The position numbers and the translations under genes are program-made. From contig NIVC01000441.1 of the NCBI GenBank assembly GCA_002269645.1, forward strand, positions 248,001 to 312,000: 64,000 nt of DNA. The letters run 5' to 3'. Positions 8,028 through 11,100 of this stretch are shown here, in pieces. A model generated the notes under the pieces. The model searched no databases and was not told the DNA's origin. It worked only from the letters and a program-made list of their open reading frames with translations. How positions within the stretch are numbered: position 1 is the stretch's first letter; each line of letters begins with the position of its first letter. This DNA is from Macrostomum lignano (taxonomy: Eukaryota).

Positions 8028-8180
8028 TCAGACATCCACAATAAACTCCGGATTAACGTAGGAGAAGCCGGTGAACTCAGTCTGGTCCAGGTTCATGATG
8101 AACAGCTTGTCAGTTGGCGTCAGTTTGGCCGCCTCGTCTGTGAACTGACGATCGAAGTTGCTGACGTCGCGGGCAGATTT
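8028..8180 (-). CDS. PRKCB: PKC alternative terminal exon B (distal; PKC-betaI-like C-tail)
   Basis: Acceptor cgcgccag|AAA in phase 0. Encodes [50 protein letters not shown], with turn motif LTP and canonical hydrophobic motif FTGFSY. Confidence 0.93.
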   Translation of the reverse strand, partial: KSARDVSNFDRQFTDEAAKLTPTDKLFIMNLDQTEFTGFSYVNPEFIVDV

Positions 8181-11100
8181 CTGGCGCGAGGGGTGCATGG
8201 GGCGTGTTTTTGGTATCTGGCTATACGGTATACATTATATTACACAGGAGGCTTAGCTTGCATTGCTTTAACTGTACAGCTGTTTACAATAATGAATATA
8301 TATTCGAATATATCAAGGATTCAAAAAAGTGCTGCTAACAGTCGATTAAAGTCATAGTTTGAGATGTCTTGGCTAATGCAATGTCTGCTATTTAAAATTT
8401 CCTAACCTGAACTTGACCCAACTGATTTTTATGGTATTTTCGAGGAAATCGTTCGACTAAATAATTTTTTAAGGTCTGGTCTGGTCTGGTCTGGTCTGGT
8501 CTGGTCTGGTCTGGTCTGGTCTGGTCTGGTCTGGTCTGGTCTGGTCTGGTCTGGTCTGGTCTGGTCTGGTCTGGTCTGGTCTGGTCTGGTCTGGTCTGGT
8601 CTGGTCTGGTCTGGTCTGGTCTGGTCTGGTCTGGTCTGGTCTGGTCTGGTCTGGTCTGGTCTGGTCTGGTCTGGTCTGGTCTGGTCTGGTCTGGTCTGGT
8701 CTGGTCTGGTCTGGTCTGGTCTGGTCTGGTCTGGTCTGGTCTGGTCTGGTCTGGTCTGGTCTGGTCTGGTCTGGTCTGGTCTGGTCTGGTCTGGTCTGGT
8801 CTGGTCTGGTCTGGTCTGGTCTGGTCTGGTCTGGTCTGGTCTGGTCTGGTCTGGTCTGGTCTGGTCTGGTCTGGTCTGGTCTGGTCTGGTCTGGTCTGGT
8901 CTGGTCTGGTCTGGTCTGGTCTGGTCTGGTCTGGTCTGGTCTGGTCTGGTCTGGTCTGGTCTGGTCTGGTCTGGTCTGGTCTGGTCTGGTCTGGTCTGGT
9001 CTGGTCTGGTCTGGTCTGGTCTGGTCTGGTCTGGTCTGGTCTGGTCTGGTCTGGTCTGGTCTGGTCTGGTCTGGTCTGGTCTGGTCTGGTCTGGTCTGGT
9101 CTGGTCTGGTCTGGTCTGGTCTGGTCTGGTCTGGTCTGGTCTGGTCTGGTCTGGTCTGGTCTGGTCTGGTCTGGTCTGGTCTGGTCTGGTCTGGTCTGGT
9201 CTGGTCTGGTCTGGTCTGGTCTGGTCTGGTCTGGTCTGGTCTGGTCTGGTCTGGTCTGGTCTGGTCTGGTCTGGTCTGGTCTGGTCTGGTCTGGTCTGGT
9301 CTGGTCTGGTCTGGTCTGGTCTGGTCTGGTCTGGTCTGGTCTGGTCTGGTCTGGTCTGGTCTGGTCTGGTCTGGTCTGGTTTCCAGGTGTCTAACAGGTG
9401 TCCATTTCTAACACAGGTGATTTCCAGGTGTCTAACAGGTGTCCATTTCTAACACAGGTGATTTCCAGGTGTCTAACAGGTGTCCACTTCTAACACAGGT
9501 GATTTCTAGGGGTCTAACGGGTGTCCATTTCTAATACACGTGATTTCCGGGTGTCTAACAGGTGTCCAATTCTAACACAGGTGATTTCCAGATGTCTAAC
9601 AGGGGTCCATTTCTAACACACGTGATTTCCAGGTGTCTAACAGGTGTCCATTTCTAACACAGGTGATTTACAGGGGTCTAACAGGGGTCCATTTCTAACA
9701 CAGGTGATTTCTAGGGGTCTAACTGGTGTCCATTTCTAACACACGTGATTTACAGGTGTCTAACATGTGTCCATTTCTAACACAGGTGATTTACAGGTGT
9801 CTAACAGGGGTCCATTTCTAACACAGGGGATTTACAGGTGTCTAACAGGTGTCTATTTCTAACACAAGTGATTTACAGGTGTCTAACAGGTGTCCACTTC
9901 TAACACAGGTGATTTCCAGATGTCTAACAGGGGTCCATTTCTAACACACGTGATTTCCAGGTGTCTAACAGGTGTCCATTTCTAACACAGGTGATTTACA
10001 GGGGTCTAACAGGGGTCCATTTCTAACACAGGTGATTTCTAGGGGTCTAACGGGTGTCCATTTCTAACACACGTGATTTCCAGGTGTCTAACAGGTATCC
10101 ATTTCTAACACATGTGATTTCCAGGGGTCTAACGGGTGTCCATTTCTAACACACGTGATTTCCAGGTGTCTAACAGGTATCCATTTCTAACACATGTGAT
10201 TTCCAGGTGTCTAACAGGGGTCCAATTCTAACACACGTGATTTCCAGGTGTCTAACAGGTGTCCATTTCTAACACAGGTGATTTCCAGGTGTCTAACAGG
10301 TGTCCAATTCTAACACACGTGATTTCCAGGTGTCTAACAGGTGTCCATTTCTAACACACGTGATTTCCAGGTGTCTAACAGGTGTCCATTTCTAACACAG
10401 GTGATTTCTAGGGGTCTAATGGGTGTCCATTTCTAACACACGTGATTTCCAGGTGTCTAACAGGGGTCCATTTCTAACACAGGTGATTTCCCGGTGTCTA
10501 ACAGGTGTCCATTTCTAACACAGGTGATTTCCAGGTGTCTAACAGTGTGATTCTCTAAAATCTTACACATGCCCACTTCCAGCAGCGCAGGGATTAAGGA
10601 CTACATATAATTAAGCCATATACATTTCGAGTCATAAAGGAATCAAGAGTCCAGTGTCAACCCGAGGCGTCAAGAGCGCTCATCAGCTGGTACAGATGCG
10701 ACGCCTGTGGCGCATAGTTCTCGTTGCGATGCTCAAAATCAAAGAACGGATCGCAGCCGGTCACAGTTGACAGATTGTGAATGACGGCCATGTCAACCGG
10801 GGTTAGCTTCACGTCGCACTTCGTGAACACTTTGTCGAAGTTGTCAACATCGCGGTCGTCTCTCTGCAAACGCGGCGACAACGACACGGCGTACACCACT
10901 GGCTATCGCTCTATAGTGCCTATTATAGTAGCCAGCCAGTAGTATTATAGTGATTCTTTTAAATGAAAGCGCGTGCTGAAAGTTCTATAAACAGTGACAA
11001 GAAAAATACGAGGAAACAGTGCAGAGAGTAGTGACAACAACTGTTCCACTCAGTGCGCTCGCCAATCCAGTTGGGTGAAACGCAAAACAAGTGTGCGCAA

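Follow-up and report, generated by a model that had tools for sequence, protein, structure and literature searches.

Acidic residues at the phospho-acceptor position of the hydrophobic motif (F-x-x-F-[DE]) are found in atypical protein kinase C (aPKC), which carries Glu, and in the PRK/PKN kinases, which carry Asp; the PIF motif of PRK2 is a constitutive acidic docking site for PDK1. Among conventional protein kinase C (cPKC) genes, pkc-2 of Caenorhabditis elegans is said to have alternative C-terminal exons. In cPKCs the hydrophobic motif is autophosphorylated last, and only with that phosphate does the enzyme take up an autoinhibited form that resists phosphatases; a kinase lacking it is dephosphorylated and degraded (PMC12721161). 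Mammals make the betaII isoform of PRKCB by including a stop-containing cassette exon, whereupon the betaI exon becomes 3′ untranslated region (PMC3537621). Here we describe the cPKC gene BOX15_Mlig019218g1 of the flatworm Macrostomum lignano, which lies on the minus strand of a 64,000-nt stretch of contig NIVC01000441.1 (the window) and occupies positions 8028 to 40493 from its start codon to the stop of its last exon in the spliced model. The gene has two homologous tail exons, a distal one (exon B) resembling betaI and a proximal one (exon A) with Glu at the hydrophobic-motif phospho-site. On balance we think it probable that exon A is a maintained alternative V5 exon, a local version of the A-type proximal tail of many protostomes, whose acidic motif replaces the final phosphorylation.

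A cPKC gene with two homologous tail exons

The exons were located with a PKC-beta sequence, which served as a probe and had no other use, and junctions were chosen by requiring GT/AG borders, an open frame, and the best fit. The resulting model has GT/AG borders at all junctions and consists of 14 common coding exons (ATG at 40493, ending at 11829) followed by two phase-0 tail exons, all on the minus strand. The product of the common exons comprises a pseudosubstrate, a pair of C1 domains, one C2 domain, and a kinase domain of the AGC family; Pfam recognized C1_1 twice, C2 (107.6 bits), Pkinase (222 bits), and Pkinase_C, with no other domains. Direct reading of the sequence showed the Ca2+-binding Asp residues of C2 to be unchanged relative to the probe. 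The nearest solved relatives of the protein are PKC beta and alpha, and named cPKCs from molluscs and annelids match it at 70-75% identity. The C1-C1-C2-AGC kinase order and the C2 Asp residues bear out the identification as a cPKC made in an earlier model-generated reading of the same DNA (the sequence-only reading). The top database match to the model was P0001, annotated as "hypothetical protein BOX15_Mlig019218g1" (660 aa), which is the B isoform and is 98% identical; the corresponding locus in assembly GCA_002269645.1 (L001) has 0 mismatches to the window. A further UniRef entry from M. lignano (P0125, 180 aa) is an older model of the same gene that runs through the acceptor region of intron 13 and past the stop of exon B. 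Its errors are a sign of the unreliability of the older annotation, which also produced the entry P0121 discussed below.

The last common exon (exon 14; 11829-11969, minus strand) ends ...QPPFKPRI in phase 0, followed by the donor GTGAGT. The coding part of the proximal exon (exon 15A; 10657-10863, minus strand) consists of 68 codons and a TGA stop at 10659-10657, and is preceded by the acceptor tttgcag. The coding part of the distal exon (exon 15B; 8028-8180, minus strand) consists of 50 codons and a TGA stop at 8030-8028, preceded by the acceptor cgcgccag. Both exons start after AG, are in phase 0, and would join exon 14 at the same junction, as the sequence-only reading had proposed; its coordinates and translations for the two were exact.

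Tail A retains several elements of a cPKC tail within 10801-10842 (minus strand), namely NFD (10842-10834), F-x3-F-T, and the Thr-Pro of the turn motif (Thr codon at 10803-10801). Its hydrophobic motif (10729-10746, minus strand) reads F-F-D-F-E-H, with the Glu encoded by GAG at 10734-10732. In a MAFFT alignment of 31 sequences, this residue (Glu327) occupies the Ser/Thr column of the motif; F323 and F326 are invariant and N330 nearly so. HMMER likewise pairs ..FFDFEH.. of tail A with ..FEGFEY.. of the PKC-alpha chain 8u37, which reads FEGFSY in chain 3iw4. Because the MAFFT and HMMER alignments agree, the Glu is placed at the hydrophobic-motif phospho-site, and the earlier description of an exon that keeps the turn-motif Thr and has Glu at this site holds. 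Isoform A thus lacks the Ser/Thr of the cPKC motif F-x-x-F-S/T-F/Y, reading FFDFEH instead. Tail A passes the Pfam cut-off for Pkinase_C. The G+C content at third codon positions (GC3) of exon A is 0.69 versus 0.675 in the remaining coding sequence of the gene, with a G+C content (GC) of 0.40 in the non-coding flanks.

Tail classes across invertebrates

The C-termini of 240 relatives were read for tail classes, and the invertebrate tails were found to fall into two. B-type tails end in [YF]VNPEF..V, are near-invariant from flatworms to insects and hemichordates, and equal vertebrate betaI. A-type tails follow the consensus ..RKAENFDK.FT...TP.D...IMNID..F..F[ST][FY].NP[FY]F and continue into a variable extension. 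In Octopus sinensis, O. bimaculoides, and Mya arenaria, a single gene is listed in RefSeq with isoforms (X1/X2) of both classes. In the genome of Dimorphilus gyrociliatus, exon 14, an A exon, and a B exon follow one another in that order. The annotated terminal exon of the Capitella teleta gene (CAPTEDRAFT_168196) is an A exon, and an intact, unannotated B exon is present 732 bp downstream (KB291874.1; 36518-36670 of locus L006). No A exon was detectable in the 4.6-kb intron that precedes the B exon of the trematode Echinostoma caproni. The A-proximal, B-distal order is therefore seen at the genome level in a flatworm and in annelids, and in molluscs by the RefSeq naming of isoforms. Since the annelid genomes and the mollusc isoform pairs share the design, it is not particular to this gene; the two-tail design is old, occurs widely among invertebrates, was not invented in the window gene, and is already visible in public annotation. 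The sequence-only reading had left open whether the design was ancient or convergent and had suggested a survey of other spiralian loci: the order A then B in Capitella and Dimorphilus and the mollusc pairs favor the first of these origins over the second, E. caproni having the B exon only. Two fused protein models, P0018 from Nucella lapillus and P0032 from D. gyrociliatus (9580-10272 of L005), combine a partial A tail with a whole B tail and so contain two NFD...TP segments; these fusions are probably annotation errors due to tandem tail exons. Literature searches turned up no earlier account of invertebrate cPKCs with two tails, nor any of a cPKC whose hydrophobic motif is acidic.

One profile was constructed for each class from invertebrate sequences other than those of M. 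lignano (16 A tails, 27 B tails), and the class score of a tail was taken as its A-profile bits minus its B-profile bits. Tail A of the window gene scored +14.8 bits, toward the A profile, and tail B scored -46.7 bits, with 114 bits on the B profile itself. Vertebrate betaI tails scored between -24 and -30 bits; the tails of vertebrate alpha, betaII, and gamma fell between -2 and +4 bits and preferred neither profile. Down to its last residue, tail B aligned with chain 8se2, a solved PKC-betaI (E=4e-40); it shares 25 of 31 residues with human betaI from LTP onward, and covers all 44 positions of Pkinase_C (55 bits). Its hydrophobic motif is F-T-G-F-S-Y, with the phosphorylatable Ser of cPKCs encoded at 8063-8061. 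The close likeness to PKC-betaI that had been noted for the distal exon is thus upheld by the match to 8se2 over the whole tail and by the strong preference for the B profile, and on sequence similarity tail B can with confidence be matched to vertebrate betaI.

Conservation and predicted role of the acidic tail

A second copy of the gene (L002, NIVC01000525.1) encodes the same protein, and its intron 14 is 98.3% identical to that of the window. Its exon A is identical at 206 of 207 nt, the sole change (CAT to CAC) being synonymous. Compared with the 16 changes in 924 nt of intron, about 3.6 changes would be expected in exon A where 1 was seen, a difference that is not significant. An older paralog, P0004 (Mlig032341g1; loci L003 and L004), is 80% identical to the window protein, with a dS of 2.07 (saturated) and a dN/dS of 0.05 between the two genes. 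This paralog lacks an A exon, its exon 14 and B exon being separated by an intron of just 97 bp (L003 19159-19549; L004 19071-19461); its B tail is 92% identical to that of the window gene despite a gene-to-gene dS of about 2. A third M. lignano cPKC, P0121 (UniRef A0A1I8GZD6), ends in an A tail with the motif F-E-G-F-E-H-R-N. Window tail A and the tail of P0121 are identical at 41 of 62 residues (66%) without gaps, including DPF..FEHRN and AP..S.L, and the kinase part of P0121 is 77% identical overall to the window protein. P0121 and P0004 are about equally diverged from the window gene at the protein level.

When tail A alone was compared exhaustively by phmmer with 1.84 billion representative sequences, P0121 (E=3e-18) and a second relative, P0258 (E=2e-8), were recovered; the other three of the five matches (P0257, P0259, and P0260) are long repetitive proteins and were discarded as noise. 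P0258 is an exon on a 1.5-kb genomic contig from Logan run DRR639838; it has a CAG acceptor with a pyrimidine tract, and a GC of 0.62 versus 0.41 upstream. The exon encodes QDPRKAENFDKSFTKAQVKLTVVDEAVLRNLAVGDIDPFAEFDFVNSDFAPQVSNL..., and its tail reads RKAENFDK...DPFAEFDFVNSDFAPQVSNL. It joins a canonical A-type start to a Macrostomum-type end, the latter with an insertion ahead of the motif, DPF, an Asp in the phospho-acceptor position, and [FY]AP..S.L. Its hydrophobic motif, F-A-E-F-D-F, is the full acidic form with an aromatic residue after the Asp. P0121 and P0258 scored +16.7 and +27 bits, respectively, toward the A profile. The P0258 exon (531-908 of L009) has Thr-Val in place of Thr-Pro at its turn motif (KLTVVD) and a Pro/Ser-rich C-terminal extension of about 70 residues.

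At the distance of P0004, with silent sites saturated, an unconstrained exon would be unrecognizable; the resemblance of tail A to that of the similarly diverged P0121, the occurrence of the P0258 exon, and the coding-like GC3 of exon A indicate that exon A has been maintained. The three tails form a small subfamily of acidic A tails, which argues against both a dead duplicate and a recent duplication of exon B. Judged from these alignments, the Glu of tail A is conserved and not a product of decay, and the acidic hydrophobic motif is real and limited to a small, lineage-specific version of the A tail. We infer that exon A is used in mRNA; the isoform pairs named for molluscs and the P0121 model, which ends in an A tail, are indirect evidence for the use of both tails.

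A separate origin may be imagined in which exon B was duplicated within the Macrostomum lineage to give its A exon, which then converged on the A tails of annelids and molluscs and on vertebrate betaII. The first 11 residues of tail A are indeed nearer to B-type tails and betaI (..RDVSNFD..) than to the canonical A type (..RKAENFD..), and among solved structures tail A matches betaI best (72 bits versus 58 for betaII), but P0258 links the RKAENFDK start to the Macrostomum-type end DPF..F[DE]...AP..S.L, and the A profile is favored by about 15 bits. Over the first 28 residues tail A is identical to M. lignano tail B at 16 positions and to the A tail of Capitella likewise at 16; TPVD.AV.H, however, is common to tail A and Capitella A, and the exon is proximal, as in annelids. 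We regard such a duplication as highly improbable.

If exon A is instead a maintained alternative V5 exon, as we prefer, splicing of exon 14 to A or B would yield two kinases that share the C1-C1-C2-kinase core and differ in their tails. In isoform A, the fixed charge of the Glu would replace the final autophosphorylation, which locks a cPKC in its autoinhibited, phosphatase-resistant state. The isoform would reach a mature, stable form without being phosphorylated there, and dephosphorylation of this position could not turn it off; it would still depend on the turn-motif/TIM and activation-loop phosphorylations, on Ca2+, and on diacylglycerol (DAG). Isoform A is thus predicted from its motif to be phospho-independent at this position.

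Several observations weigh against this interpretation. Divergence between the window and L002 is too low for a direct test of selection; P0121 is a predicted model, fragmentary and taken from an older annotation; the NCBI annotation of the gene gives isoform B only (P0001); and neither AATAAA nor ATTAAA occurs between the stop of tail A and exon B in the window. After the Glu, tail A reads His-Arg-Asn-Glu where [FY]-x-Asn-Pro is usual, unlike any known functional form, and Pkinase_C matches it over profile positions 1-26 of 44 only. An AlphaFold2 model of the kinase domain with tail A, made from a 31-row alignment, had a mean pLDDT of 48, and its docking on the N-lobe was uninterpretable.

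The annotation of isoform B alone and the lack of a poly(A) signal past exon A would fit an unused relic, or pseudo-exon, in a gene that makes only isoform B, as would the degenerate hydrophobic motif, the complete loss of exon A from the sister paralog P0004, and the lack of an A-tail transcript in the protein collection searched. That last silence is weak, since M. lignano transcripts of isoform B from Logan were equally unseen: the collection yielded no transcript-derived fragments from this species of isoform A, nor of B, and so its silence on A says little. A 93-aa query made of the end of exon 14 and tail A returned no candidate from the 5.8-billion protein collection, a result that is uninformative, as the word index also missed P0001, with which the query shares 25 residues. 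Against a relic stand the intact open reading frame (ORF), acceptor, and phase of exon A, its coding-like GC3, the 66% gapless identity to a paralogous tail at a distance where silent sites are saturated, and the third related exon, P0258, in DRR639838. The sequence-only reading had itself allowed for a dead duplicate; given the intact exon, the 41/62 match, and P0258, we consider this very unlikely.

It is also conceivable that exon A is functional and no simple phosphomimic. The tail may then leave the hydrophobic pocket of its own kinase unoccupied, and isoform A would be a weakly autoinhibited, short-lived, or scaffold-like form, or the acidic F-x-x-F-E motif could act in trans as a constitutive docking site for PDK1. 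Such roles would accord with the His at position +1, the lost Asn-Pro, and the restriction of the Pkinase_C match to the first 26 of 44 positions; the fact that F-E-H-R-N is conserved whole in the two M. lignano paralogs, together with the conserved AP..S.L extension, suggests a specific binding surface. Both Phe residues of the motif that insert into the pocket are nevertheless invariant, P0258 keeps the canonical F-x-x-F-D-F-V-N, and a Ser-to-Glu change at this very site has been used experimentally in PKC-alpha (FEGFEY in 8u37). We therefore think a role of this kind unlikely, and favor replacement of the final phosphorylation by the Glu.

The residue at the phospho-site was surveyed among the unique tails of a non-random sample, comprising 48 A-type and 90 B-type tails. 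All 90 B-type tails had Ser/Thr, with no Asp/Glu and no Asn, versus 41 of the A-type tails, which otherwise had Asp/Glu (6) or Asn (1); acidic residues or Asn were thus found in 7/48 A-type and 0/90 B-type tails of this sample. Besides the window tail and P0121, the A tails without Ser/Thr are those of a cPKC-like protein from Tara Oceans (FADFDF; P0050 and P0246), of two fragments, one from JGI (FGDFDY; P0126) and one nematode-like (FSGFEF; P0137), and of Gongylonema (FRNFNF; P0227). P0258, found after the count, is a seventh acidic A tail, and a Meloidogyne fragment (FAIFDH; P0181) was left unclassed by the counting script. Nematode fragments in the sample include both tail classes, and the residue at the phospho-site of their A-type tails varies among Glu, Asp, Asn, and Ser (P0137, P0181, P0227, and P0141); to our knowledge, the acidic residue in nematode tails has not been singled out before. 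The occurrence of acidic or Asn tails in several lineages indicates that the change arose several times, always in the proximal exon. One Tara Oceans contig (ERR1726547; 801-3248 of L008) carries an uninterrupted, cPKC-like ORF of 815 codons with the order C2-C1-C1-C2-kinase, including an extra N-terminal C2. This ORF has Asp at its hydrophobic motif (FADFDFVNPVY), and among named proteins it is closest to the cPKCs of arthropods (about 66% identity).

A wider and quite tentative possibility is that bilaterian cPKC genes ancestrally had a frozen, betaI-like exon and a freely evolving proximal exon, and that the latter repeatedly became acidic (in Macrostomum and its relative, in nematodes, and in a marine organism). 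This would give PKCs regulated by Ca2+ and DAG that do without the final autophosphorylation and are exempt from the phosphatase-driven quality control by which vertebrate cells set their PKC levels. A single gene with a natural Glu isoform beside a normal Ser isoform would offer a built-in comparison of phosphorylation-dependent and -independent maturation, in a flatworm for which transgenesis and RNA interference are available. In the survey the betaI-like tail is the ancient, near-invariant one and the proximal tail the seat of lineage-specific change, which helps in reading the betaI/betaII split of vertebrates.

Splicing mode, surrounding DNA, and comparison with described systems

A donor-like site, GTAAGA after TGT, is found at 10561-10566 (minus strand), 91 nt past the stop of tail A, and is conserved in L002. 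If used, it would make exon A a cassette that is spliced onto exon B. Past the stop of tail B, the first AATAAA is reached after about 240 nt; the A and B exons of Capitella and Dimorphilus have candidate poly(A) signals between them. Given the lack of a poly(A) signal after tail A and the conserved donor-like site, exon A could be either a cassette exon or an alternative last exon.

The interval between the two tail exons is 2477 bp in the window versus 1696 bp in L002. It contains a 41-bp tandem array of 28 copies (9380-10545), which adjoins a perfect (GGTCT)181 microsatellite (8473-9380; 908 bp, 100% matches), and the two jointly occupy most of the interval. Because the spacing of the exons differs between the genomic copies, the arrays must differ in length between them. 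More tandem arrays, with 26/77-bp and 50-bp units, are present at 11153-11444 (intron 14) and 12232-12500 (intron 13); short arrays of this kind fill the introns of the gene generally and differ between its two copies. Owing to their tandem repeats, the introns of the gene contain long stop-free runs; of those that start with AG, about 10% reach 68 codons, and ORF length was dropped as evidence for exon A. The upstream neighbor of the gene (about 44289-64000, minus strand) is a P-type Ca2+-ATPase of the SERCA type, recognized from stray tblastn matches (such as EFSRDRKSM, near 51.9 kb) and from the Cation_ATPase_N, E1-E2_ATPase, and Cation_ATPase_C domains of called genes in L001 and L002.

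The tail isoforms of Octopus and Mya and the exons of Capitella and Dimorphilus belong to the same two classes as those of Macrostomum, with A proximal and B distal in the annelid genomes. The A tails of annelids and molluscs keep Ser/Thr in F-x-x-F-[ST]-[FY]-x-N-P, whereas that of Macrostomum has Glu-His there, and it differs from them also in an insertion of three to four residues before the motif and in the AP..S.L extension. Alternative tails alike in kind are reported for pkc-2 of C. elegans, a nematode and hence of another phylum than Macrostomum. In aPKC and PRK/PKN, as in tail A, an acidic residue stands in for the phospho-acceptor, and chains of iota-type PKC were among the matches in the Protein Data Bank. 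Those kinases, however, carry PB1 or HR1 domains, whereas Pfam finds C1-C1-C2 and neither PB1 nor HR1 in the window protein, and their acidic residue is followed by Tyr, where both M. lignano A tails have His instead of an aromatic residue. The likeness lies in the possible workings of the tail and not in family membership.

Vertebrate PRKCB resembles the window gene in having tandem homologous tail exons after one constitutive exon, at the same codon position and in the same phase. The solved betaI and betaII chains (8se2 and 3pfq) part right after KPKA, which corresponds to the KPRI that ends exon 14. The sequence-only reading had likened the two M. lignano tails to vertebrate betaII and betaI, and its comparison stands for the design and for the distal exon; that the proximal exon is betaII is not settled by scoring, with the vertebrate tails other than betaI at -2 to +4 bits. 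Position, AENFD, NID, and the variable extension point to such a correspondence, which on these features is plausible but unproven. That reading had also taken vertebrate betaI and betaII to arise from alternative last exons, whereas mammals include a stop-containing cassette exon (PMC3537621). As to splicing, the betaII exon of PRKCB is thus a cassette, and exon A of the window gene may be a cassette or an alternative last exon. In both PRKCB and the window gene the distal exon is of the betaI type and extremely conserved; both PRKCB tails, however, have a phosphorylatable Ser, whereas the proximal tail of the M. lignano gene has Glu.

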